A stretch of DNA of 64,000 nucleotides, taken from the IMG/VR virus record IMGVR_UViG_3300031884_000002, positions 186,001 through 250,000 of that record. One strand, given 5' to 3'. The position numbers and the translations under genes are program-made. The notes under the pieces are model-generated. The model saw nothing but the letters and a program-made list of their open reading frames with translations, had not been told where the DNA came from and searched no databases. Of the stretch, positions 4,568 to 18,651 are shown one piece after another (position 1 is the first letter of the stretch; every line of letters begins with the position of its first letter).

Positions 4568-5275
4568 TTAAATTATACATTTTCCATTAGCACAGCTTGC
4601 TTCGGCAGTATGTTGTGTCTCGTCGTCGTCTTCTTCTAGTTTTTTATAATCGACCATAGACCAATTTTTTAACAACTCGTCAAACTTTGCATTTTCTTCA
4701 TCTGTTATAACGGCTTCCATAGGAGGCTGTTTGTAAATTTTATCACCCGTAAAAGGCAATAGAGAAACTGCGGTAAAATCCTTTTGATTATCAAATAAAA
4801 ACTTGGTAACATCATCCCACTCTTCATCTTTTACCATAACCGTACAACTAACACTGTGGTTTAATGGCTTAGTATTTACACTTGTAGTTCCAGAATTAAC
4901 CCAATTTTCTTGGGTTAATTTAATAAGTCTTAAATGTTCTATTGCCGATAAATCAGCTTTAATTTTTACATTTTCCGGAACTTCTATTGGAAATGTAATA
5001 ACATCATCCGTTTTATTTTCGCTCCAAACACTTTCTTCACAAGCATGTTCATTAAATAATTTAAAATATTTATATACATTATCTTCTTTATTAACTTGTA
5101 TTCTTCTAAGATAGCGCCTAGAATGATGTGGATGTATTCCGGATGCGGCTGATAAAACAATGCTATTAGTATTATGTGTTACTGTTCCATTTTTTAATTG
5201 ATAAGTATGCGTTTTATCAACTTCTATATCTACTGTTAATTTACGCATTCCAGTTTTTATTGATTTTATTTTCAT
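4568..5275 (-). CDS. nrdJ: Class II RNR fragment 3: 35-aa IntC plus 200-aa C-extein
   Basis: ..TVDIEVDKTHTYQLKNGTVTHN|TNSIVLSAASGIHP..YLRRIQ..HSVSCTV; terminal redox pair CANGKC. Confidence 0.9.
   Translation of the reverse strand: MKIKSIKTGMRKLTVDIEVDKTHTYQLKNGTVTHNTNSIVLSAASGIHPHHSRRYLRRIQVNKEDNVYKYFKLFNEHACEESVWSENKTDDVITFPIEVPENVKIKADLSAIEHLRLIKLTQENWVNSGTTSVNTKPLNHSVSCTVMVKDEEWDDVTKFLFDNQKDFTAVSLLPFTGDKIYKQPPMEAVITDEENAKFDELLKNWSMVDYKKLEEDDDETQHTAEASCANGKCII
5171..5275 (-). mobile_element. Split intein RNR-2, C-fragment (35 aa, +1 Thr)
   Basis: Block F (VDIEV) and block G (THN|T). Confidence 0.9.
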
Positions 5276-6270
5276 AATTTTATATTTGTATTTATCTGAT
5301 CTATAACTTGTTCTATCGTTTCGGTTATATTCTTTTTAAATTGTTTTTCTTTTACTCGTAATATGACATATTTTTTCGACTGTAGTAAAAACTCTTTGAC
5401 AATATCACGCTCTTTTATATGTTCCATGTTATGCCAATATTCCCCATCAAATTCTATTATGATATTGGATATTACAACATCTGGCACACAATATTTTAAA
5501 TTATATGGATTGTCCTCAAATACAATAACTTCCGAATTAGTAATTGGACATCCTCTAAACAAATACTTCAAATCATCCGATAACGACATATATAATAATT
5601 TTGAAAATTGTAATTGTGACTTCGACTCTCCAAAAAAACAATTCATTTTACTATCTATATATTCACGCCATTTTATTTTTCCATCCGTATCTCCATATTT
5701 ACAAATAAAAAAATTCAAATCTCTACTTTGATATTTTTTAACTAATTCCGTTGCCTCAATCAATGACTTTCCTTTTTTTAAAACCCAATCATCGACTTTC
5801 CTAACACATACTCGATTTCGCTTCCATTCTTCAATTTTAAATTTTGCATCGGCTCCATATATACGAACACAATTTTCCATATTTAAAGATGATTTTTTAG
5901 AATGTATATTCTTTATATTTTTTATATCATCTTCAGAATATCCATTCAACCTTAAAGATTCTTCCGACACCGATAATTTTCTATTTTTTTCTTTATATTT
6001 TTTAGTTCCATCGACTTCTCCGTATTTTTTAATATAATATGGCAACGTTCCTCTTGGTTTTAACTTTTCAGTATATTCTTTATATTTTTTAATACCGTCA
6101 CATTTTCCAAATTTAAATATATACATTCGTTCAGAATGAGTGCATGAATATGTCTTAAATCGCTTAGTTCCAATAATCAGTCCATATTTATGAATTAAAA
6201 ACCTCTTTAATCTTAATAATTTTGTGTTTTTAGTTTTCATTAAACGTGTATTAAACCATATATTACACAT
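5272..6270 (-). CDS. Free-standing Vsr-like/PD-(D/E)xK homing endonuclease between the halves of split intein RNR-2
   Basis: KYGxxxG repeats; VPDVV..IIIEFDGEYWH..ILRVKE; ATGA overlap with the IntC ORF. Confidence 0.85.
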   Translation of the reverse strand: MCNIWFNTRLMKTKNTKLLRLKRFLIHKYGLIIGTKRFKTYSCTHSERMYIFKFGKCDGIKKYKEYTEKLKPRGTLPYYIKKYGEVDGTKKYKEKNRKLSVSEESLRLNGYSEDDIKNIKNIHSKKSSLNMENCVRIYGADAKFKIEEWKRNRVCVRKVDDWVLKKGKSLIEATELVKKYQSRDLNFFICKYGDTDGKIKWREYIDSKMNCFFGESKSQLQFSKLLYMSLSDDLKYLFRGCPITNSEVIVFEDNPYNLKYCVPDVVISNIIIEFDGEYWHNMEHIKERDIVKEFLLQSKKYVILRVKEKQFKKNITETIEQVIDQINTNIKL

Positions 6271-6289
6271 GACTTAATACATATAAATA

Positions 6290-7138
6290 TCAGTCAAATG
6301 ATAAAATATCATCGTTTTTTTCTAGATTTCTCGCTTCTACATATCCCCGACCTTTAACTAAAAATTTATGATTTGGAGTAGTTGTAACAATAGTTCCATC
6401 ATCCATTTCCACATCTATAGTATCGGATACTCCATTTATATATAACTTTGTAATATATTGCCAATCATTATTCTCATCTTTAACCATAATCTTAGAAGTT
6501 ACAGGTAAAAATTGTTTTTCATTTAAATTTTCATAATCTTCTAATTTATATCCATTTATCTCAAACAATTCCGATAAAGTTTTATCTCCGATAGAAGTTT
6601 TTATAATAGTCTCGGGAACAACACAACCTTCAGGTTTTATACATGTAATTCTTGCCGCTTGATTTATGCCTATTTTCTTAGCCCATATTTTATTAGTTTC
6701 GACTGCTACTTTGGCAGATTGTTTCTGAAACTCTGGATTGAATAATATATCAGGATTATCCATCATTCCAGTTATAGAAACTCCTAATAATGCTTCGTTA
6801 TTTGACAATTCCTCGGAAGTATGTCCTAAATATGGAAATGAAGTATATCCAGCTTGTAAAGTTCCTATTAAAGTAGCCGCCCAAGTAGCGTCTTTAAACT
6901 TATCACTGGAAGTTATTTTTGCTCCATTTATGGAAGTTAAATTACACATTTGGAATCCACAACGCCCATCATCGGTTACTGGAATAAATGAAATTTCGAA
7001 GCAGTTATGTATTAAAATATTATTAGCAAAAAAATTATGATTATTCTTTACAGATATATCATATACATCTTCATTTGGACGAACCGTTATTTTTTTTATT
7101 TTAATTCTGGTAATTTTTTTATTCTGTTTTGTTTCCAT
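6290..7138 (-). CDS. nrdJ: Class II RNR fragment 2: IntC (45 aa) - extein (126 aa) - IntN (111 aa)
   Basis: VYDISVKNNHNFFANNILIHN|CFEISF..FQMCNLTSIN..LLGVSITG..TCIKPEG|CVVPET..TTPNHKF. Confidence 0.92.
   Translation of the reverse strand: METKQNKKITRIKIKKITVRPNEDVYDISVKNNHNFFANNILIHNCFEISFIPVTDDGRCGFQMCNLTSINGAKITSSDKFKDATWAATLIGTLQAGYTSFPYLGHTSEELSNNEALLGVSITGMMDNPDILFNPEFQKQSAKVAVETNKIWAKKIGINQAARITCIKPEGCVVPETIIKTSIGDKTLSELFEINGYKLEDYENLNEKQFLPVTSKIMVKDENNDWQYITKLYINGVSDTIDVEMDDGTIVTTTPNHKFLVKGRGYVEARNLEKNDDILSFD
6293..6625 (-). mobile_element. Split intein RNR-2, N-fragment (111 aa)
   Basis: Block A CVVPETII and block B TTTPNHKF, then stop. Confidence 0.9.
7004..7138 (-). mobile_element. 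Split intein RNR-1, C-fragment (45 aa, +1 Cys)
   Basis: VYDISV..HNFFANNILIHN|C. Confidence 0.92.
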
Positions 7139-7260
7139 AATTTTAATTCTTTTCTTAAACTACTTCCTGTTGTTAAATAATCTTTTATATTTCTAATTGT
7201 AATTATAGGATATTCCGTAAATATATCCTGTTTTCCTCTATCGTAAATATTATATGGGAT
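7096..7260 (-). pseudogene. Probable 3' remnant of a deleted endonuclease gene
   Basis: 54 stop-free codons with no ATG, filling the spacer between intein halves and overlapping the IntC start, as the intact nucleases do at the other three loci. Confidence 0.5.
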
Positions 7261-7268
7261 TTATAAAA

Positions 7269-8552
7269 TCAATTTATTTTTAATAAAATATCAGTCTCTG
7301 TCAAATCCTTTGCCTCTATCCATCCACGTCCCTCCACAAATACCTTATGGTCCGGAGTTAATTTCAGAACTTCTCCATTTTCTCCTTGGATTTCTAATAT
7401 TTCTGCATTTTCACGGGTTTTCATAGCCATTGTTATTTCATTATTTTCTAAAGAACGAGTTTCTATATTATATGATATTGCATCAAACTTTTCCCCGTTG
7501 TTGTATCGTTCTACCAATTCGTCTATTCTAATATCTCCTTTAGTAGTAGATACCAATGTATCTCCTGTTACACAAGGGTTTAATAATTGACGTTCATCGA
7601 CGACATAGAGAAATCCAGGTTCTCCAAATTGTTTTGTTTTTTCTATTAACAATTTAAATTCTTTGAATGTAGTTCTTCCACGGACAATGATGGCTGAATT
7701 ATTACTTCTGGCTCTCTGTGGATTTTTATCAAACCAGTTACCAGTTTTGGCATTCATCATTTCATCATCGTCTGCATCGAATATCACGCTACATGCACTT
7801 CTTCTAATTCCTCCACTTAAAACAGCATCGGCACAATGCATAAGTATATCATATGCATTTATAGGCTTAAGTCGTACTTGGTGGTCCTTTTCAATAATTT
7901 CATCTAATAATTCTTTTACTTTTTTATGACAATTTTTAAGTCCTTTATAACCGGGGGCTTTACCACCACCCGTTTTAAGTTTTGCTCCTTTTGGTCTTAT
8001 TTTACTATAATCAAATACAATTTTTCTTCCGGAATATGCTGTATTTTTAAAATAACAATTTAACAATGCTTCGATACTATCGGACCATCCTTCAATCGAA
8101 TCTTGTACTACATATGTAATAATAGTTCCAGTTTTATCGTTGGCATTTACCAATGCAGGAAGACGATTTAGAAATCGTTTAGTTAATCCAAATCCAATAC
8201 CAGTCCCACATAATAATGCATAAAAAGACTCCGCAAAAGCACGAATAGAATCTATATGTCTTACTCCGCAATTAAACATTCTACAGTTATGAGCTTCTAT
8301 AGCCTTTCCTCCAAATTGCATAGAACGCATAGAGGGAGTAACTTTCCGTTCACGTACAAAATCAAATGCTCTTACAATTTCCAATTTATCTTTTTCATTT
8401 AAAAAACTGTATTTTTTTAAATGCATTTTTTCTACTCTGGATACAGTTTCTTCCCATGTTTCTCTTCTCTTTTTCTTTTCTTCATATTTTGCATATTTTG
8501 TAGTAAAGGTGAAGTTTCCCATCTCATCTAACATATTTGGTATCTTATTCAT
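7269..8552 (-). CDS. nrdJ: Class II (B12-dependent, monomeric-type) RNR fragment 1: 326-aa N-extein plus 101-aa IntN
   Basis: RRETWEETV, PSMRSMQFGG, RMFNC, FDYSKIRPKG, VLSGGIRRSA, GEPG..NP|CVTGDT. Confidence 0.92.
   Translation of the reverse strand: MNKIPNMLDEMGNFTFTTKYAKYEEKKKRRETWEETVSRVEKMHLKKYSFLNEKDKLEIVRAFDFVRERKVTPSMRSMQFGGKAIEAHNCRMFNCGVRHIDSIRAFAESFYALLCGTGIGFGLTKRFLNRLPALVNANDKTGTIITYVVQDSIEGWSDSIEALLNCYFKNTAYSGRKIVFDYSKIRPKGAKLKTGGGKAPGYKGLKNCHKKVKELLDEIIEKDHQVRLKPINAYDILMHCADAVLSGGIRRSACSVIFDADDDEMMNAKTGNWFDKNPQRARSNNSAIIVRGRTTFKEFKLLIEKTKQFGEPGFLYVVDERQLLNPCVTGDTLVSTTKGDIRIDELVERYNNGEKFDAISYNIETRSLENNEITMAMKTRENAEILEIQGENGEVLKLTPDHKVFVEGRGWIEAKDLTETDILLKIN
7272..7574 (-). mobile_element. 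Split intein RNR-1, N-fragment (101 aa)
   Basis: Block A CVTGDTLV and block B LTPDHKVF, then stop. Confidence 0.92.
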
Positions 8553-8611: not shown

Positions 8612-9073
8612 TTATTCTCCTTTGGATTTATTCCATTTTTTACGGATTATATCTTTTTGAGCTTCTTCTTGACCTTTGAGTTTATTAATAAGTTCCATAC
8701 CTTCGATAGAAGCCATCTCATACATTCCAAGTCTCCCAGTAGCTGCATCCAAATCACAAATATAACTACTACCATCGGGACCAAATCGATTTTTAATAAT
8801 ATGGAACTTAGCAGTATTAGTAAGTTTATTATCCATTGTTCTTGCTTGAGAAGCTACAAAATCAGAAGTCATTAACTTCTTATATGATTCCGCCATGTCA
8901 TCTCCTTCAATAATATCATTCTGAGCGGCACTATTATGCGTATAAATATCATTAGCAAAAAACATATGAGTATCATCTACTGTAATATCAATAGTTTCTT
9001 GATCTCCTATACACTCAATACTAACAATTTCATCAAGGTTAAATTCTTCTGTGTTTAATTTATGTTCTTTCAT
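8612..9073 (-). CDS. Replicative helicase C-fragment: 47-aa IntC plus 106-aa C-extein
   Basis: TIDITVDDTHMFFANDIYTHN|SAAQ..MAESYKK..IIKNRFGPDG (DnaB-family KNRxG motif). Confidence 0.9.
   Translation of the reverse strand: MKEHKLNTEEFNLDEIVSIECIGDQETIDITVDDTHMFFANDIYTHNSAAQNDIIEGDDMAESYKKLMTSDFVASQARTMDNKLTNTAKFHIIKNRFGPDGSSYICDLDAATGRLGMYEMASIEGMELINKLKGQEEAQKDIIRKKWNKSKGE
8933..9073 (-). mobile_element. Split intein helicase, C-fragment (+1 Ser)
   Basis: Blocks F and G ending THN|S. Confidence 0.9.
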
Positions 9074-10118
9074 AATATTTATTTACAAATCTAATACATT
9101 TTTTAATTACTTTTTCTTTATTTTTAAGATATTCTTCTTCTGGAATTCTTAATATTTTATATCCTAATGATATTAAAAATAAATCTCTTCGCTTATCTTT
9201 TTCTATGATGGATGGGAAGGAATGCCAATAACTACCATCAAACTCTATTATAGCATTCCCACATTTAAAATCAACATAAATTAAGTTTAATCCATATTTT
9301 CCATTGGCAAAAAATGATTGTTCTTTATTATAGGTAAAATACTTTACCAATTCTTTTTGTTTAGATACTAATTTAGATGTTATATTATTAAACAACTCTT
9401 GTGATATTTTGCTGTATGGATTACTTTTACCTCTACAATTAGAAACCATTTTTTCTATATGGTTATAATATTTCTCAACCCCTTCAATCGAACCAAACCT
9501 TTCAATAAATCCTATTAGTGACAATGTATGATTTCTTTTATCATATGATGCCCTCCAACGTTTATATCCATCTTCTACTCCCCATTTACTTTGAAATTCC
9601 GGCAGCGTCCTTCCATTTTTCCATTTTCCTTTTTGCTTTCGTTTCTCAATTCCAAGTTTCCAATTTTTTAAATATTTCTCCCATTTTATTTTACCCTCTT
9701 CTTTTCCATATTTTTTAATATATCCATCCAATCCTAAATTAGATATTTTTCTTTTAGATATTATTTCTTTTTGTTCCACTGTATAATTTTGATTTCGTGC
9801 TGTAATTTTTTTATTTTGCTCCTCAAATATTTGTTTGCCGATTAAATCACCATATCTATGTTGTAATGATGCTAATGAAAATCCATCTTTTCCGAATTTT
9901 TTCGATTCGGTCAACCTCTTTACCCAACTTCCATCAACATTATATTTTAATAATTTAACTATCATTTCTTTTTTTATATTTCTAATATAATTTTTATTAA
10001 ATATTTTTATTATACTATCAATTTCCAATAAAGAGTGATTAGTTAAAATTGCCTTAAATGGAGCCGCAAATTTTTGTGATAAAAAATGTTCTCTATTTTT
10101 GTAATATAATTCTTTCAT
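9060..10118 (-). CDS. Free-standing Vsr-like homing endonuclease between the helicase intein halves
   Basis: KYG/KWG/RFG repeats; YVDFKC..IIEFDGSYWH..GYKILRIPE; same family as 5272..6270. Confidence 0.85.
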   Translation of the reverse strand: MKELYYKNREHFLSQKFAAPFKAILTNHSLLEIDSIIKIFNKNYIRNIKKEMIVKLLKYNVDGSWVKRLTESKKFGKDGFSLASLQHRYGDLIGKQIFEEQNKKITARNQNYTVEQKEIISKRKISNLGLDGYIKKYGKEEGKIKWEKYLKNWKLGIEKRKQKGKWKNGRTLPEFQSKWGVEDGYKRWRASYDKRNHTLSLIGFIERFGSIEGVEKYYNHIEKMVSNCRGKSNPYSKISQELFNNITSKLVSKQKELVKYFTYNKEQSFFANGKYGLNLIYVDFKCGNAIIEFDGSYWHSFPSIIEKDKRRDLFLISLGYKILRIPEEEYLKNKEKVIKKCIRFVNKYYERT

Positions 10119-10151
10119 ATTATATAAATATGGACCGTAACCACAAAAACA

Positions 10152-11501
10152 TCATTTTTTAGTAAATAATTTATCTCCTATAGATAAGCCACTTATAATA
10201 CTTTTTAGTTTTTCATATTGTGTTGGAAACCTATGATTTTCAGAACATTCTATAATTTTACCACTTTTCAATGTAATTCTATACACTGGTTGTTTTTTAA
10301 CAGGATATATATAAGATACTTTTCTATATCCGTTATGTGTTAATATCTTATCTCCAACTATTATATTTTTGATTTTAATATTACCTTTAAGTTCTTCGTT
10401 CACAATAGTTTGTAAAGACAAACACCGATTAGCCTGAGAGACCGACCAACCGGCTATTTGGAGTGACCCTAATACAGACCTGACCTCTTCGCTTTTTGCC
10501 CCGGCATCTTCATATGATTTAGAACCTTTGGGTGCAGTCGAAGATAATAACAAATCCACATAGTCAACTACCCACATATCAATATGAATACCGGTGACAA
10601 TTTGAAGATGTTCGGTAAATGCTTTTAAAGTATCAGCCGTAGCTGTTTTTAATGGAAAATATTTAATGTATAAAGTGCCAGCCCCATTAGCCTTCGTAGC
10701 ATCCAACGCTACTTTTATTTTAGCCTTATTTGCTTGACGTTCTTGAAATGGAATGCCAGATAAATAAGAATCATATCTGTGACCAGTATAATCAGCACTT
10801 AATTCCATGGTAAAATGAAGAACATTTTTTCCTTGTTTAAGTGCTTCCGCTCCAAAATTAACCAATGTCCAGCTTTTACATCCACCGGGATTTCCACATA
10901 TAATACCCAATTCTCCCTTTCCCAATCCGCCATCCATCAATTTATCTAAAATTGGTTGATTTGTTTTTATTGTGTATCGAGTATCTTTAGACGACCTAGT
11001 TTCAAAACTCTCAAAATAATTTTCCCCAATATCTCTATCCATTCCAGCTTTAAGAGCTTCATCTAACTTTAATTTAATAGTATCAAACTTTTGATTTTTA
11101 AGAAGTTCTAATGAATCTGCAATTGCCGATTTTAATTTTTGATGCTTACAAAACTCTAAAAACTTATCCTTAACATACGTTAAATCGGTAGCAGATGCAT
11201 TTTTAAAAGCGGATAATAACTGGGATTTTACCGCCATTTGAAGGGTACTATCAGAAATTAAATTACATTCTTGTCCCAAAATCATCATAGTAGGAGTATC
11301 TTTATACTGTTTCCAGTGGTCTATGATTTTGGAAACTATCCATTTTTGTTGGTCGGTATCAAAAAAATCAGGAGTTAATATATCATATATTCTCTCCAAA
11401 AAAGCCCTATCTGAAATTAGAACTGAAATTACTTTTGCTTGAAACTCTTTTTCATATTGTCGGGATGCTAACGTATCTACTTTATTATATTCTTCATTCA
11501 T
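10152..11501 (-). CDS. Replicative helicase (T4 gp41/DnaB-like) N-fragment: 359-aa extein plus 90-aa IntN
   Basis: GGLGKGEL..GNPGGCKS, HFTMEL, VVDYVDLL, SQANR|CLSLQT..CSENHRFPT. Confidence 0.9.
   Translation of the reverse strand: MNEEYNKVDTLASRQYEKEFQAKVISVLISDRAFLERIYDILTPDFFDTDQQKWIVSKIIDHWKQYKDTPTMMILGQECNLISDSTLQMAVKSQLLSAFKNASATDLTYVKDKFLEFCKHQKLKSAIADSLELLKNQKFDTIKLKLDEALKAGMDRDIGENYFESFETRSSKDTRYTIKTNQPILDKLMDGGLGKGELGIICGNPGGCKSWTLVNFGAEALKQGKNVLHFTMELSADYTGHRYDSYLSGIPFQERQANKAKIKVALDATKANGAGTLYIKYFPLKTATADTLKAFTEHLQIVTGIHIDMWVVDYVDLLLSSTAPKGSKSYEDAGAKSEEVRSVLGSLQIAGWSVSQANRCLSLQTIVNEELKGNIKIKNIIVGDKILTHNGYRKVSYIYPVKKQPVYRITLKSGKIIECSENHRFPTQYEKLKSIISGLSIGDKLFTKK
10155..10424 (-). 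mobile_element. Split intein helicase, N-fragment (90 aa)
   Basis: Block A CLSLQT and block B CSENHRF; resembles gp41-type split inteins as I recall them. Confidence 0.9.
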
Positions 11502-13097: not shown

Positions 13098-14169
13098 CTC
13101 TTACTTGATTATCCAAGAATGAAAATACGTCAGATACCCAATTATTATAATCTGGCATATTTACATCTAATCTATCATTTCTTACTAATTTAAAAAATGC
13201 ATTTCTATCTAATTTTGGTATTTTATTTTCAGTTAATATTTCTTGAAGATGTAATTGGGAAGTAGTTCCTAACATAGTATCTTTTAATTGCATCAATGCA
13301 TAATTACGTTCTATTATAGATTTATTAGTAACAATATTCTCACATACTACAAACTTATTTCGCATATCAGTCGCATGATTCACAATCTCATCAATAGTAT
13401 GAATTGTTTCTTCTTTTAAATATGGAAAATGCTTACATACAGTTTTTAAACCGGCTCTTTCAATTCCATTTATATTATCACTTTTATCTCCGTCCATACT
13501 TCTAAATAACACAAAATTATTAGGATGAATATTATATTCCGAAATAACTTCATTCACTCCATATATTCGTTTTTTAGTAGGAGAATATATTTGAACTTTA
13601 GAACTTGCCAACTGTAAAAAATCCTTATCAGTTGACATTATAGTTACTTTTTTGGAGTTTTTAAATTGCTCCAATGCCAGATAAGATATTACGTCATCGG
13701 CTTCAACCATATTTTCGCTTACTATATTTACTGGTAATACTTGAAGATAATTTATAAATTGAAGATATTCTTTTTGTTTCTGTTGGTCTTCATTATCAGG
13801 AGTAGAATCATCATCATATACTCTATTCAATCTAATTTTATTTGTGCTATATGCTTTATAGGCAGGGAAGATTGCTTTTCTTTTTTGAGACCCCCCAACT
13901 CCGTCAAATACTACTATACAACGAGAAGGAGTTAATAATTTAATTGCCGCACCTAAAGATTTTAGAGAAGCCACAACTCCACCACTATGTTCGCCATTGG
14001 CATTCATTGAGACGGTGGCACAAAATGCTCGGATGAATAGATTATTACCATCAACTATTAAGATATGATTATTAGTTTTATCTCTCCAGTTTAAATGGGA
14101 ATCCTTCATTTCGGACTTTATGTTTTTAAAAAAAGAAAATAACTTGGCTTTATCTAAATCATCACTCAT
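13087..14169 (-). CDS. 5'-3' exonuclease/flap endonuclease (PolI 5' nuclease, T4 RNase H-like)
   Basis: ILIVDGNNLFIRAF, VVFDG, EADDVI, STDKDFLQL, GDKSDNINGI. Confidence 0.92.
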   Translation of the reverse strand: MSDDLDKAKLFSFFKNIKSEMKDSHLNWRDKTNNHILIVDGNNLFIRAFCATVSMNANGEHSGGVVASLKSLGAAIKLLTPSRCIVVFDGVGGSQKRKAIFPAYKAYSTNKIRLNRVYDDDSTPDNEDQQKQKEYLQFINYLQVLPVNIVSENMVEADDVISYLALEQFKNSKKVTIMSTDKDFLQLASSKVQIYSPTKKRIYGVNEVISEYNIHPNNFVLFRSMDGDKSDNINGIERAGLKTVCKHFPYLKEETIHTIDEIVNHATDMRNKFVVCENIVTNKSIIERNYALMQLKDTMLGTTSQLHLQEILTENKIPKLDRNAFFKLVRNDRLDVNMPDYNNWVSDVFSFLDNQVRDGK

Positions 14170-14483
14170 AAGTTTTTAATCCAATTCCATAATTTATTAT
14201 ACCATTTTATAATATATTTTCGTTTATGTTCTTTAATTGCGGTTTTCAATACTTTAGTAGGATATAATCTATTATTTAAGTTTGGTTCATCCAAATAAAA
14301 AACCAATCCAGTTGCTTTAGATAAAGGCTGTATTTCTAAAAACTCTTTGATATCAAATGCCGGAAACTTTTTATTTATAGTAGGTAATGTTATTCCCTTA
14401 AAAGAATCAATAGTATTTGATTCAATTGGAATGTTGAATGGTTTACGTTGTTCGTTTAATATTTTTTCTTTACGATGTCCCAT
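14166..14483 (-). CDS. Small chimeric protein: major-capsid-like segment plus prohead-protease-like segment
   Basis: aa 28-65 FKGITLPTINKKFP..EIQPLSKATGLVFYLD resembles the gp23 QPxxxPTGxxF region; aa 68-91 match ORF 17310..17717. Confidence 0.55.
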   Translation of the reverse strand: MGHRKEKILNEQRKPFNIPIESNTIDSFKGITLPTINKKFPAFDIKEFLEIQPLSKATGLVFYLDEPNLNNRLYPTKVLKTAIKEHKRKYIIKWYNKLWNWIKNL

Positions 14484-14489
14484 ATAAAA

Positions 14490-14517
14490 AGTATATACTA
14501 AATTGAAACATAATCAA
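14490..14517 (-). promoter_or_regulatory. sigma70-type promoter TTGATT-16-TATACT, 6 nt from ATG
   Basis: Read on the minus strand. Confidence 0.65.
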
Positions 14518-14534
14518 CTTATTTTAGAAAATAA

Positions 14535-14561
14535 AAAAGAGTGGACTTTCACCACTCTTTT
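14535..14561 (-). terminator. Intrinsic terminator after the recA C-fragment
   Basis: aaaagagtgg..ccactctttt inverted repeat with T-tract. Confidence 0.75.
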
Positions 14562-14580
14562 CGGTAACTATTTAGAAGAG

Positions 14581-15858
14581 TTATTCTTCTGATTTTGATT
14601 CAGTAATAGGAGGAACTTCCTCTGATACTTCTTCAATGTCTTCCACAATTTTAGAATTAGGGTCTCTATAATTCATAATATAATCATTACAAATCACTTG
14701 ATAAAACTCTTCTTTAAGATCTTTATCAGAGTTCATAAGTTCTACAAACTTAGAAGTATTAAACTCCAATGATTCTCCATTTGCTCTTTTCCATGTATAT
14801 TTAGCAGCAGTTCCAGTTATAATTCCACGCTCTTTTGAGAAATTAAGCCAACTTGCCAAATCTTGGATACCGGAATCATAATGGATTTCAAATTGTGCTC
14901 CTCGTGCTCCCGGTCCCATTCTACTCTTAATAACTTGACAAGTACATTTTACTCCAATTACTTCATCATTTTTCTTCAATTTTCCAATGGTTCCCATTCT
15001 TACTCTGGTAGAACACGCATAACTTAAAGATTTTCCACCGGGAGTAGTCCATTTGTCTCCGAATGGACCTGCATTCATATTAAATCTTAATTGATTAGTA
15101 AATACAATCAGGATTCTTTGTTTAGCAATAAGACCGGTTATTTTTCGGAATGCCTTTCCTAAGATTAGGGATTTTCCTGTATTATATCCATCAATCCCAT
15201 GTTCTGCTTCAAGTTCTTTTTCGATAGTAGCTTGTGCTACTGAATCAATAAAAATAGTTAATAATTTATCTTTATTTGCTTTTCTAAAAGCACCTATACA
15301 AGTTTCTATATGTGTAAATAAATCTTCCAATGTTGTAAATGGAACATAATTTGTATTTTTAACATTTACTCCAAGCGCAGTCCAAAACTTTCTATCAACT
15401 GCAAACTCAGAATCAAAAAATACACTATATCCACCAAGTTTACTTGTTTCTGCAATAATATGAGCGCACATTAAAGATTTACCGGTGTTATGATTTAGCA
15501 TCCCATTTCCAAAATAACAATGTTCTGGATGTTCGACCGTAATATCTACAATTTTATATTTTCCAATTAAAGCAACTGATAATACTATACTATAAGTTTC
15601 ATCATCACATAAAATACTATGTTTATTAGGGATTATATCTTTACATTCTACCCATCCAGAATTTGTAAAAAACTTATGTTCTCGACTCACTTTTATAGTT
15701 TTTCCATTATCTAATGTTACTAAATATGTATCCAATATACCTTTATTAACAAATCTGGTTATTTTTGTATATTCACCATTCAATGTTTTTACTTTTATGG
15801 TTTTTCCTTCTTTAAGGAGAGAATCTACTTCTCCTACAGTTATTATTTTTTTATTCAT
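14581..15858 (-). CDS. recA: RecA/UvsX C-fragment: 124-aa IntC plus 301-aa C-extein
   Basis: ..VSREHKFF..IVDITVEHPEHCYFGNGMLNHN|TGKSL..FFDSE..IFIDSVA..FTNQLR..TTPGGKSL. Confidence 0.9.
   Translation of the reverse strand: MNKKIITVGEVDSLLKEGKTIKVKTLNGEYTKITRFVNKGILDTYLVTLDNGKTIKVSREHKFFTNSGWVECKDIIPNKHSILCDDETYSIVLSVALIGKYKIVDITVEHPEHCYFGNGMLNHNTGKSLMCAHIIAETSKLGGYSVFFDSEFAVDRKFWTALGVNVKNTNYVPFTTLEDLFTHIETCIGAFRKANKDKLLTIFIDSVAQATIEKELEAEHGIDGYNTGKSLILGKAFRKITGLIAKQRILIVFTNQLRFNMNAGPFGDKWTTPGGKSLSYACSTRVRMGTIGKLKKNDEVIGVKCTCQVIKSRMGPGARGAQFEIHYDSGIQDLASWLNFSKERGIITGTAAKYTWKRANGESLEFNTSKFVELMNSDKDLKEEFYQVICNDYIMNYRDPNSKIVEDIEEVSEEVPPITESKSEE
15487..15858 (-). mobile_element. Atypically split intein RecA, long C-fragment (blocks B, F, G; +1 Thr)
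   Basis: Block B SREH and terminal HN|T in one ORF; block A absent. Confidence 0.9.
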
Positions 15859-16940
15859 ATAATATTTCTTTTTAATTTTTCTAAATTTTTATTGTCTATT
15901 ATTATTTTACCAGAATTTATAAGAGTCGATATAAAATTAATATCATATTTTGATATGTCAATATCATTCTCCGTCAAATACCCTCCATATTTTAAATTAA
16001 ATCTGGAACAATATTCTTTTAATGCCTCTGATTTTAACACATTTAATCTAATTGGCAACATATTATATGGTTTTATTTCATAAATCGAATTTCCTATTAC
16101 TATATCAGGACAGTATGTTCGACCAATTCCCATATCATCTTTATATTTTATTCTATGTTTTGATATTTGGAATGTAATATTGTTAAAAATCAAATGACAC
16201 ATTATTCGCAATTCTAATGAAGATCTACAAAAATATTTTATTCCATCGTTTAATATCCAACACTTAACTCCAATTCCTGCATTTTTTCCGGGCGATTTAC
16301 CATACATCGGATTTAACCGTCCGGTTTGTGGATTATTTTTAGGATATCCGTATTTTTCACATAATTGCTTGCATTTTACACTTCCAAATCCAAATTCATT
16401 CTTCAATGTATTATAAACTTGCTGTTTATATTTTAACTTATGTTTTAATTCCTCAAATCTCTTTATGATTTTTGAGGTAATTGGTTTTAATTCTACTCCC
16501 CGTGTAATTGGTATTGCTTTTCTTCCGTTTATCTTAGACTGTATATTAATATAATTTTTAGAATTCTCTTTTCTCTGTATATCTAAATTTTTATATTTTA
16601 AAAAATATAAAACTTGCTTATGCGAAATATTTTTCATTATGTTTTTAACATCTTGTAATATTCCTCCATTATTAATGGATTCCAATACTAACATTCCATA
16701 TATTTTATCTAATTCTATAAGTTTTATATTTCTTTTAGCAAGCGCATATTCACTAAGTTGATTTGATTTATATTTAATGTTATTATATTTTAATTTATCA
16801 ACTAAATTAAATTCATTTGCAATTCTCCTAATAGGCTTTCTTCCAATTTTTAATTGGAAGATTTCCGTTTCGCTTAAACCATCGTGTATAGATGATATAA
16901 TCGTGTCTATTGTCTGTGCATCTGTTACTTTTTTAGCCAT
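15855..16940 (-). CDS. Free-standing endonuclease, TnsA-like PD-(D/E)xK, between the RecA intein halves
   Basis: NPMYGK motif; CRSSLE..IKYKD..RTYCPDIVI..YEIKP; ATGA overlap with the IntC ORF. Confidence 0.75.
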   Translation of the reverse strand: MAKKVTDAQTIDTIISSIHDGLSETEIFQLKIGRKPIRRIANEFNLVDKLKYNNIKYKSNQLSEYALAKRNIKLIELDKIYGMLVLESINNGGILQDVKNIMKNISHKQVLYFLKYKNLDIQRKENSKNYINIQSKINGRKAIPITRGVELKPITSKIIKRFEELKHKLKYKQQVYNTLKNEFGFGSVKCKQLCEKYGYPKNNPQTGRLNPMYGKSPGKNAGIGVKCWILNDGIKYFCRSSLELRIMCHLIFNNITFQISKHRIKYKDDMGIGRTYCPDIVIGNSIYEIKPYNMLPIRLNVLKSEALKEYCSRFNLKYGGYLTENDIDISKYDINFISTLINSGKIIIDNKNLEKLKRNII

Positions 16941-16987
16941 AATATTTAATATTGGTAATATAATATAAATATCAGGCTACATAAAAA

Positions 16988-17305
16988 TTATTCAATAATA
17001 ACTTCAATTAAAGTATCTTCCGTAACACAGCCTTCTAATCCTGATAATTCGGTCACTCTACCTACAGGTAGACCTCCGTGTGCTCTATTAGAAATTGCCA
17101 AATCTAATAAAGTTGAACCGGTTGATACCCATTCTTTTATTTCGGATGGATTATCATCTTCATCTACGAAATATGCTACTTTGGTTCCATCTTTAGATGC
17201 CTTATTCATTGCGGTTTGTAGCAACAACGCTAAATCATCTCTATTAACATTAGACTCTACTTCTACATGTTTTGATTTTGTATTTATATTTTTTTCTTTT
17301 GCCAT
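16988..17305 (-). CDS. recA: RecA/UvsX N-fragment: 92-aa extein plus 13-aa IntN
   Basis: VSTGSTLLDLAIS..GGLPVGRVTELSGLEG|CVTEDTLIEVIIE*. Confidence 0.9.
   Translation of the reverse strand: MAKEKNINTKSKHVEVESNVNRDDLALLLQTAMNKASKDGTKVAYFVDEDDNPSEIKEWVSTGSTLLDLAISNRAHGGLPVGRVTELSGLEGCVTEDTLIEVIIE
16991..17029 (-). mobile_element. Atypically split intein RecA, 13-aa N-fragment
   Basis: Block A only (CVTEDTLI), then TAA. Confidence 0.85.
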
Positions 17306-17309
17306 AATT

Positions 17310-17717
17310 TTATTTTTTAATTTGTTCTAAAGGTTCATTTGAAATAAGTGCTATATATTCAATTTCATAATTAGAAACTAAATATGAACCATTTTCTTGT
17401 TTATCAGATAAGTTTCCAATACCAACTGGGGTTAATGTAAAGGTTCCGCTTTCTAAGAATTCTTTAATTGGAATTTGTTTAGGATTTACAGTTGTATCTA
17501 AACAAAGAGATACTTTTCCATCTGGACTTAAGTTAATATCCGAAATTTGAGAACAAATATTTGTAATATCCTGATTCATACCACTATATAAAAATGCATG
17601 TTTAGTTTCAACATATTGTTTTTTATATTTAATAATAGCTTCATTTAAGACATCATTAGGATATATTCTATTATTTAGAGATAATTTATTTGCCATAAAT
17701 GGAAATTCTACATCCAT
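17310..17717 (-). CDS. Catalytically degenerate prohead protease (T4 gp21-like) paralog
   Basis: NNRIYPNDVL..ICSQI..TPVGIGNL..NYEIEYIALISNEP follows the gp21 motif order without the His/Ser/Asp motif residues. Confidence 0.6.
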   Translation of the reverse strand: MDVEFPFMANKLSLNNRIYPNDVLNEAIIKYKKQYVETKHAFLYSGMNQDITNICSQISDINLSPDGKVSLCLDTTVNPKQIPIKEFLESGTFTLTPVGIGNLSDKQENGSYLVSNYEIEYIALISNEPLEQIKK

Positions 17718-17723
17718 AGAAAT

Positions 17724-17751
17724 ATTATATCAACTTTTTTAGTTTTATCAA
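17724..17751 (-). promoter_or_regulatory. sigma70-type promoter TTGATA-16-TATAAT, 6 nt from ATG
   Basis: Read on the minus strand; extended -10 TG present. Confidence 0.7.
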
Positions 17752-17767
17752 CTTTTTTTAAATAAAT

Positions 17768-17808
17768 AAAAAGACCGTATAATACTAAAAATATTATACG
17801 GTCTTTTT
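17768..17808 (-). terminator. Intrinsic terminator after the SSB gene
   Basis: aaaaagaccgtataata..tattatacggtcttttt long inverted repeat. Confidence 0.8.
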
Positions 17809-17820
17809 TGTAATTATATT

Positions 17821-18651
17821 TTAAGATGATTTTGCAAAAAACTTGTCAAAATCTTCTTCTTCTGCCGCAGTTGGAACCGGCGTTGCAGTTTCAGCAACGT
17901 CTTTTTTATCAACTGTAGCCGATGCTTTTTCGACTTCGGCTGTCGAAGGCTCTTGACCTTCTGGAGCCAAATAATCTTCGATAATTGCGTCCAATTCCTC
18001 ATACGTCTTCAATGGGAATACTTGAGTAATATCCAATTGTTTTCGGATGCTTTCCATAGCCTCTTTATTGGTAGGAGATACCGCTAAAGTTTTCTTCGGA
18101 CTTGGAATAATAGTTGTCTCAGGAAAAGGTTTTCCAGTTTTCTTATCAATTTTCTGACCTTTTTCAATGAATTTAACGTCAATATCATTGCCTTCACGTA
18201 AATCTGTAATATCGCCCCATTCAGTATTACAATAAGAAAGCAATTGCTTATATACCGTAATTCCAAATCCCCAGAAACGAACCCCTTGTTCCTCTTCACC
18301 ACGAACAATAATAGGAACATAAGTTCTAGCAACCGACTTAAAGTGCTTGTTTGCTAATTCCTTTTCTTCCGTAGTACCGTTTGTAGTAAGAGCCTCAAAT
18401 CTCTCTTGAAATGGATCAGGTTTTCCAAAAGTGGAAGGTGCCAATATAGAAGCAATTCCATTGAACTTGTAATAAAACTTCAATTCAATAAATGGAGAAT
18501 CTTGTTCTTCACCATTTGGGCGATAAGGAACTATTCGGATTCTTTGAGTACCTTCTCTTGGTTTCCAGAGAAGACGATTAAAATCAACGGTTTTTTTACC
18601 AGATTCTAATTGTTTAAGTTTATTTTGTAGTTTTTCTATGTTAAGTGCCAT
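17821..18651 (-). CDS. Single-stranded DNA-binding protein (T4 gp32-like)
   Basis: LWKP..IRIVPY..PFIE..VRGEEEQGVRFWGFG..GDITDLREGND; acidic tail EEEDFDKFF; next to recA. Confidence 0.8.
   Translation of the reverse strand: MALNIEKLQNKLKQLESGKKTVDFNRLLWKPREGTQRIRIVPYRPNGEEQDSPFIELKFYYKFNGIASILAPSTFGKPDPFQERFEALTTNGTTEEKELANKHFKSVARTYVPIIVRGEEEQGVRFWGFGITVYKQLLSYCNTEWGDITDLREGNDIDVKFIEKGQKIDKKTGKPFPETTIIPSPKKTLAVSPTNKEAMESIRKQLDITQVFPLKTYEELDAIIEDYLAPEGQEPSTAEVEKASATVDKKDVAETATPVPTAAEEEDFDKFFAKSS

Follow-up and report, generated by a model that had tools for sequence, protein, structure and literature searches.

Naturally split inteins usually outperform artificially split ones (PMC10189870), and reviews to March 2026 give N-terminal intein fragments (IntN) of 15–37 amino acids (aa) for natural, atypically split inteins. 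The published examples are PolB16 OarG with 15 aa, 'the shortest characterized so far' (PMC10189870), VidaL with 16 aa, AceL TerL with 25 aa and GOS TerL with 37 aa (PMC13014065, PMC10189870). Here, we analysed a 64,000-nt window (positions 186,001–250,000 of IMG/VR record IMGVR_UViG_3300031884_000002), which belongs to a jumbo-phage contig of 353,772 bp with a G+C content (GC) of 30.5%. In this window, the recombinase gene uvsX is broken into two open reading frames (ORFs), and its sequence, together with a structural model, makes it very probable that the break is a real, selectively maintained, atypically (S1) split class-1 mini-intein, for which splicing is predicted. An initial annotation of the stretch had given a range of about 15–37 aa for atypical natural IntN, which agrees with the published one, and had placed this IntN among the shortest natural ones; at 13 aa against the published 15 aa, comparison with the catalogued inteins bears it out.

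The closest described relative is VidaL, a naturally split intein (PDB 6VGV/6VGW; Neugebauer 2017 and Burton 2020, as cited in PMC13014065). We took its sequence from the supplement of bioRxiv 10.1101/2023.01.23.525296, which gives an IntN of 16 aa, CLPKEAVVQIRLTKKG, and native exteins ESG/.../SGK, and from PDB 6vgv. Like the window intein, VidaL has the class-1 Cys1, is split after β2 (S1) and has a C-terminal fragment (IntC) of ~125 aa, which starts within one residue of the window IntC start (aligned residues 3–127; E 1.6e-5 against 6vgv). The two IntC fragments are 21–25% identical, the VidaL-type IntN of 16–17 aa is basic (+3) whereas the window IntN of 13 aa is acidic (−4), and the +1 residue is Ser in VidaL and Thr in the window. 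Because the charge is reversed, the two may be orthogonal.

A tblastn search of GenBank phages revealed an unannotated, VidaL-like fractured UvsX-like gene in the Pseudomonas jumbo phage PA5oct and its relatives (Table 1). The first two PA5oct ORFs are annotated only as hypothetical, and about ten related Pseudomonas phages match likewise. This intein interrupts a UvsX-like gene at the P-loop position that is also used in the window, so the window type and the VidaL type are allelic. The intervening nuclease of PA5oct is Vsr/DUF559-like, in contrast to the endonuclease-I-like one of the window.

Two further systems bear on the position of the break. PolB16 OarG is likewise a natural S1 split with a very short IntN, but it is a cysteine-less Ser1/Ser+1 intein of another lineage in a PolB gene, and its IntN is two residues longer than that of the window. 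According to PMC13014065, Ssp DnaB M86, S1-split artificially with an 11-aa block-A IntN, also trans-splices; this intein was engineered and evolved in the laboratory, whereas the window intein is naturally split. The gain over the natural record is 2–3 residues, and artificial IntN of 11 aa already exist.

The arrangement of the locus is that of the fractured genes of Dassa 2009 (PMC2677866), in which an N-part with IntN, a free-standing endonuclease gene and an IntC with C-part lie on one strand in phage DNA-metabolism genes. The eight host types of that survey do not include UvsX, all but one are split at the canonical site with an IntN of 88–105 aa, and their nuclease genes are GIY-YIG or Vsr-like, unlike the endonuclease-I/TnsA-like gene of the window. 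The terminase locus that became AceL/GOS TerL breaks after motif N1 (Dassa 2009, PMC2677866). The architecture is not new: it is that of a fractured gene, VidaL and PolB16 already have the S1 break, and VidaL-type inteins use the same insertion site; the known mechanism is unchanged. New relative to the literature consulted are the 13–14-aa IntN, the large family and the endonuclease-I-like nuclease gene, and a literature search that did not extend to Burton 2020 and Neugebauer 2017 found no mention of the CVTEDT motif, with which the IntN begins, of such a UvsX split intein or of a putative intein named 'VidaL UvsX-2'.

Locus layout and predicted splice junctions

The uvsX locus belongs to a gp32–uvsX–RNase H module, a synteny in keeping with a UvsX recombinase, and divides the host gene between two same-strand ORFs with complementary intein parts (Table 1). 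The Pfam RecA profile matches the N-ORF with its positions 3–63 and the C-ORF with its positions 62–261 (C-ORF E 1.6e-30); since positions 63 and 62 adjoin, the two ORFs abut at the P-loop. Both pieces are UvsX-like by PHROGs (phrog_97; N-extein E 6.5e-12, C-extein E 4.8e-47). The Cys directly after SGLEG is intein residue 1 and corresponds to the class-1 nucleophile. In the C-ORF, Pfam Intein_splicing matches residues 19–78 (E 8.7e-9), and the intein part contains block B (VSREH), block F (IVDITVEHPEHCYFGNG) and block G (MLNHN), with IVDITVEHPEHCYFGNGMLNHN as the stretch spanning F and G. The class-1 motifs, namely SREH (H61), D105, H123-N124 and T+1, are all in place.

Uninterrupted uvsX genes colinear with the window exteins are present on 12 related viral contigs (L003–L013 and L015; L and P numbers are our own labels). 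The closest, L003:3857-5038, encodes 393 aa, is 77–83% identical and reads ELSGLEGTGKSLMCAHII (ELSGLEGTGKS) across the predicted junction. Because this is what excision of 13 and 124 residues would give, the junctions are fixed at G/C and N/T. The predicted product, 92 + 301 = 393 aa, has the same length and the same Walker A sequence, GLEGTGKS, as L003, so that a RecA core with an intact GxxxxGK[ST] motif would result from excision; its splice-junction peptide would be VTELSGLEGTGK. The initial annotation had read an N-ORF ending SGLEG/CVTEDTLIEVIIE-stop and a C-ORF with 124 intein residues, blocks B, F and G and then HN/TGKS, and we recovered both to the base; its proposal of a split within Walker A (GLEG/TGKS) and a 393-aa product agrees with the junctions and with the intein-less orthologue.

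The TGA of the intervening gene overlaps the start codon of the C-ORF (ATGA). The cassette has a GC of 25–26%, compared with 32–35% in the exteins, which suggests a mobile origin.

Table 1. Coordinates of the uvsX locus, of the PA5oct counterpart and of other features in the window
Feature	Coordinates	Strand	Description
uvsX N-ORF	16988..17305	-	105 aa; ends SGLEG/CVTEDTLIEVIIE, then TAA
uvsX N-extein	17030..17305	-	92 codons; ...ELSGLEG, first half of Walker A
IntN	16991..17029	-	13 codons, CVTEDTLIEVIIE; block A, strands β1-β2, net charge −4
TAA stop closing the N-fragment	16988..16990	-	from the ORF reading
Spacer / 5' leader of nuclease gene	16941..16987	-	47 nt; motif CCTGATATTTAT at 16965-16976
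Free-standing homing-endonuclease-like gene	15855..16940	-	361 aa
IntC	15487..15858	-	124 codons; blocks B, F, G, ending HN
uvsX C-ORF	14581..15858	-	425 aa; 124 intein residues, then TGKS
uvsX C-extein	14584..15486	-	301 codons from TGKS, second half of Walker A
Terminator-like hairpin 3' of C-ORF	14534..14562	-	consensus scan only
PA5oct locus (L021, NC_071039.1)	134722-137728		
PA5oct N-ORF			81 aa; ...FAGESG/CLPETAKVKIRLSKKQS (17-aa IntN)
PA5oct intervening gene			477 aa, Vsr/DUF559-like nuclease, between the halves
PA5oct C-ORF			423 aa; intein part ends ...SSHN/SGKS
Small ORF beside uvsX	17310-17717	-	135 aa
Small ORF beside uvsX	14166-14483	-	105 aa
DnaB-like (gp41-type) helicase, fractured	8612-11501	-	
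Helicase ORF	10152-11501		449 aa; ends in canonical long IntN
Helicase intervening ORF	9060-10118		352 aa; DUF559/MTES_1575 Vsr-like nuclease
Helicase ORF	8612-9073		153 aa; begins with IntC-like segment
Class II ribonucleotide reductase (NrdJ-like)	4568-8552	-	apparently three pieces
NrdJ-like ORF	7269-8552		ends with IntN
NrdJ-like ORF	6290-7138		starts with IntC, ends with second IntN
NrdJ-like intervening ORF	5272-6270		Vsr-like nuclease
NrdJ-like ORF	4568-5275		starts with IntC

Break point, conservation and alternative explanations

To place the break on the fold, we modelled a natural contiguous relative, P0117:75-217, with AlphaFold2, letting it stand in for the two pieces of the window. 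A variable loop of 3–15 residues separates CVTEDTxIxVII from (K)ITVGEVxxLL in contiguous relatives, and it is at this second segment that split IntC fragments start. The model (predicted local distance difference test score, pLDDT, 94.9) shows strands 10–15 and 18–23 as a hairpin with a two-residue turn, and the window break maps to this turn. As the break falls there, IntN supplies β1-β2 only, which corresponds to an S1 split with a short IntN of block A alone and a break after β2. The best PDB match of the model is VidaL 6vgv (E 7.8e-12, template modelling (TM) scores 0.88/0.87, root-mean-square deviation 2.1 Å). Foldseek matches to VidaL, Ssp and Npu DnaB and gp41-1 (TM 0.78–0.88) are consistent with a HINT fold, and the fold of Ssp DnaB M86 is also close (6frg/6frh, TM 0.81–0.84). 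At the DNA level, the loop codons of the contiguous allele L020 are replaced by the cassette, which starts at the stop codon, takes in the nuclease gene and ends with the new ATG.

The same three-ORF architecture is found in L002, L014, L016, L018, L022 and L023, which are 45–89% identical to the window (intein part or C-ORF, where measured). All six have a stop at the equivalent position of the N-fragment, and the ATGA overlap is present in every relative locus whose junction DNA was read. A search with the N-ORF yielded 30 distinct N-fragments with tails of the form CVTEDTxIxVII[ED]; every tail is acidic and Cys1 is present in 30 of 30. Their IntN has 13 aa in 20 cases, 14 aa in nine and 19 aa in one. 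A search with IntC yielded 58 split fragments (120–130 aa), with Thr (36) or Ser (22) at +1, together with 16 contiguous mini-inteins (133–152 aa, and one of 200 aa) that share the insertion site. Across these 74 inteins, H61, W69, D105, Y115, N118, H123 and N124 are invariant.

Comparison with the closest relative, L018, shows 89–92% aa identity in the intein parts, 74–79% in the exteins and 66% in the nuclease gene. The corresponding ratios of nonsynonymous to synonymous substitution (dN/dS) are 0.03 for IntN, 0.07 for IntC, 0.09–0.12 for the exteins and 0.18 for the nuclease gene, values that are rough because synonymous sites are near saturation (proportion of synonymous differences, pS, 0.6–0.7). 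Rough as the ratios are, they follow the pattern of an intein that is maintained and works.

This conservation bears directly on the alternatives. One is that the UvsX pieces form a non-covalent two-subunit recombinase, with the intein remnants serving only as dimerisation handles. Non-splicing fractured genes are documented (Dassa 2009), the HNH-fractured NrdA of phage Aeh1 being a reported case, and splicing in the CVTEDT family is a prediction. The break, however, lies inside the Walker A loop, where a continuous backbone is needed. Moreover, Cys1, the block B His, the block F Asp, the His-Asn pair and the Thr/Ser at +1 are invariant among the 74 inteins, at 48–89% identity. Since the residues kept are those of splicing, a mere docking module is unlikely, and we regard a two-subunit recombinase as very improbable.

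It is similarly hard to see the locus as a decaying, non-functional uvsX pseudogene whose intein was killed by insertion of the nuclease gene. In favour of decay, the break in the intein is unusually placed, and a phage can sometimes do without its recombinase. Yet dN/dS is low in every part and lowest in the intein parts, the same architecture recurs across dozens of diverged lineages, and none of the three ORFs is disrupted, their stop, start and ATGA overlap being conserved. The accumulating frameshifts and stops expected of decay are not seen in close relatives, and we regard decay, too, as very improbable.

Removal of the 1.1 kb at the RNA level, as an intron with a nuclease ORF, would give a contiguous mini-intein that splices in cis. 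Homing endonuclease genes are often found in group I introns, and recA of Bacillus and of phage 0305phi8-36 provides examples of such introns. A sensitive Rfam scan of 14000–18000 found no group I intron at E<=1 and no other intron family, and its single small-RNA match is attributable to chance; a group I intron or other RNA family was rejected on this ground. Non-coding sequence amounts to just 47 nt, and the nuclease ORF adjoins the flank on either side. Furthermore, a stop follows 13, 14 or 19 intein residues in 30 of 30 N-fragments and 58 of 58 IntC fragments have their own Met start, neither of which an intron requires. An intron is, on this evidence, extremely unlikely.

A false stop codon, introduced into a contiguous gene by sequencing or assembly as might be feared of metagenomic data, has a negligible chance of being the explanation: the exact proteins of the N-ORF, middle ORF and C-ORF are each present on 16 contigs, so that the TAA whose confirmation the initial annotation had asked for is genuine and not an assembly error, the same stop position recurs in independent diverged loci, and a conserved 361-aa ORF fills the gap.

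The intervening nuclease gene and the gain and loss of the split

The 361-aa protein encoded between the intein halves has a helical N-terminal region (aa 8–197) and a C-terminal PD-(D/E)XK nuclease domain (aa ~224–348). It also contains a NUMOD3-like sequence, NPMYGKSP, and Pfam NUMOD3 is found in two distant homologues. An alignment with its 33 homologues shows invariant R239-S240, E243, H262, Y266, P278-D279, E288 and K290. Among 29 aligned members, Pfam Phage_endo_I (PF05367) is matched by 22 and TnsA_N by 13. The family profile matches T7 endonuclease I (1fzr, 1m0d, 2pfj; E 4e-4), and this alignment puts RSsLE and YcPD on the regions of its catalytic Glu and Asp. An AlphaFold2 model (pLDDT 91.4) shows a helical N-terminal half and a C-terminal α/β domain, and its top Foldseek match is TnsA (probability 1.0, E 7e-3). 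Against this assignment, the 361-aa protein by itself has no meaningful Pfam, PHROG or PDB match, and for this reason the assignment comes from the family profile.

Sequence and model agree on an E...(P)D...(D/E)xK motif in a restriction-endonuclease-like α/β fold, and the intervening gene is predicted to encode a T7-endonuclease-I/TnsA-like PD-(D/E)XK nuclease. Its E...PD...ExK motif aligns with that of T7 endonuclease I, its best fold match is TnsA, and the homing endonuclease I-Ssp6803I is a PD-(D/E)XK precedent for a restriction-like homing fold (PMC2677866). These proteins differ from the window nuclease in their setting: T7 endonuclease I resolves junctions, TnsA is transposon-borne and I-Ssp6803I is intron-borne, whereas the putative window nuclease is free-standing within a split intein and has a helical N-terminal extension of ~200 aa and the NUMOD3-like motif. 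The initial annotation held that the nuclease inserted right after block A rather than in the usual endonuclease loop. Its position directly after block A and β2 stands; the nuclease is, however, a separate gene and not a domain of the intein.

Neighbouring genes were read at eight loci, two of which encode more distant nuclease homologues (P0071 and P0069); at each of the eight, the nuclease gene lies between uvsX-N and IntC-uvsX. A profile search of 1.84 billion representatives gave 65 clusters at E<=1e-30, mostly full-length, and ~1,000 clusters at E<=1e-10, mostly with the C-terminal module only. These clusters seem to represent a large family of probable free-standing endonucleases that apparently lacks annotation. 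Among the matches listed beyond the top ~65, most share the NUMOD3-like-plus-nuclease module and differ in their N-terminal regions.

The leader of the nuclease gene contains the motif CCTGATATTTAT(N)TTATA, which is kept in the window, L018 and L002 and is degenerate in L016 and L014. CCTGATATTTAT shows no enrichment in the rest of the window (18 matches versus 22 expected), which rules it out as a general phage promoter and suggests that it moves together with the cassette, perhaps as a regulatory element that accompanies the nuclease gene.

In a tree of the 74 inteins, built on just 125 columns and poorly supported at its deep forks, contiguous forms are scattered. The tree needs 16 changes between split and contiguous, and well-supported branches force at least 10. 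Near-identical split/contiguous pairs exist (P0113/P0115 and P0133/P0141), and the cassette is present or absent at one conserved site among close relatives. This scatter is what would be expected of a homing endonuclease gene coming and going at one site. Together, the intein-less, contiguous and split alleles document the route by which homing-endonuclease invasion is proposed to turn a mini-intein into a split one, and this route is seen to recur at a non-canonical loop. They also tie the endonuclease-I-like family, so far unannotated, to one target site.

Members of the same intein family are also found in DnaB_C helicase-domain proteins, split in P0137 and contiguous in P0147, at ~52–54% identity to the window IntC. 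Hence the family has moved between P-loops of different RecA-fold ATPases.

Proposed splicing pathway and neighbouring genes

We propose that a mini-intein in the Walker A loop (G/TGKS) was split after β2 by a free-standing homing-endonuclease gene. The three same-strand ORFs would form a single transcription unit, from which the 105-aa piece (92 aa of UvsX and IntN) and the 425-aa piece (IntC and 301 aa of UvsX) would be translated separately, translation of the C-ORF probably being coupled to that of the nuclease gene through the ATGA overlap. The acidic IntN strand would dock on the mostly basic N-terminal region of IntC, so that this strand and the first IntC strand close the β-hairpin and complete the HINT fold. 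Cys1 would then form a thioester, attack by Thr+1 would give a branched intermediate, and cyclisation of Asn124 followed by an O-to-N acyl shift would release a 393-aa UvsX with a whole GLEGTGKS P-loop. We infer these docking and splicing steps from class-1 intein chemistry and from conservation. The nuclease would be a selfish passenger that cuts nuclease-less alleles and is copied in by repair.

Several points weigh against this reading, in addition to the near-saturation of synonymous sites noted above. The Intein_splicing match scores at the Pfam gathering cut-off (35.8), homology to VidaL is remote (21–25% identity), and the spliced junction in the window uvsX is deduced from sequence and a model. 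A natural IntN as short as 13 aa has no characterised precedent, and efficient association of the halves is an assumption. In a consensus scan, the count of promoter-like sequences is not above that of shuffled sequence. As the promoter and terminator calls on either side of the three ORFs are consensus matches, the operon structure and co-transcription are put forward as part of the proposal.

A broader, joint reading would make CVTEDT the shortest natural split IntN (13 aa), efficient and orthogonal to VidaL by charge, and the nuclease an undescribed homing family that repeatedly splits contiguous mini-inteins at the β2-loop sequence. We hold this combination tentatively and give it slightly less than an even chance. 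If true, it would provide an orthogonal, ultrashort tag with dozens of natural variants for consensus design, and a live example of split-intein origin. A short IntN is accessible to peptide synthesis and barely perturbs a tagged protein, and the 30 N-fragments and 58 IntC variants, with their contiguous relatives, offer material for consensus design.

A second atypically split intein, FGDK(Y/W)/C...NHN/T, occurs further downstream in uvsX of some relatives (L016:3501-6266, L017 and L023:3418-5181) and is absent from the window uvsX. Its IntN has 15–17 aa (CVDPFTTKIKIRYNV in L016), and it is contiguous in L020 (P0084). In L016 and L017 its halves are separated by a Vsr/DUF559-like nuclease gene, which L023 lacks at this point.

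The small, apparently duplicated ORFs on either side of uvsX (Table 1) have a 30-residue motif in common (43% identity, E 1e-4), and both give a weak match to phrog_207, head maturation protease, in its N-terminal part (E 3e-4 and 5e-3). In L018, a 379-aa DUF723/DUF4379 ORF (L018:4781-5920) directly follows uvsX and overlaps its stop; since it is absent from the window, it suggests another insertion polymorphism.

The uvsX gene is not the only fractured gene in the window. A DnaB-like helicase gene is also broken, with a Vsr-like nuclease ORF between its pieces, and the NrdJ-like ribonucleotide reductase gene appears to carry two canonical split inteins, the first break being without a nuclease gene (Table 1). 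Counting one in the helicase, two in the NrdJ-like gene and one in uvsX, four split inteins lie in the window within ~13 kb.

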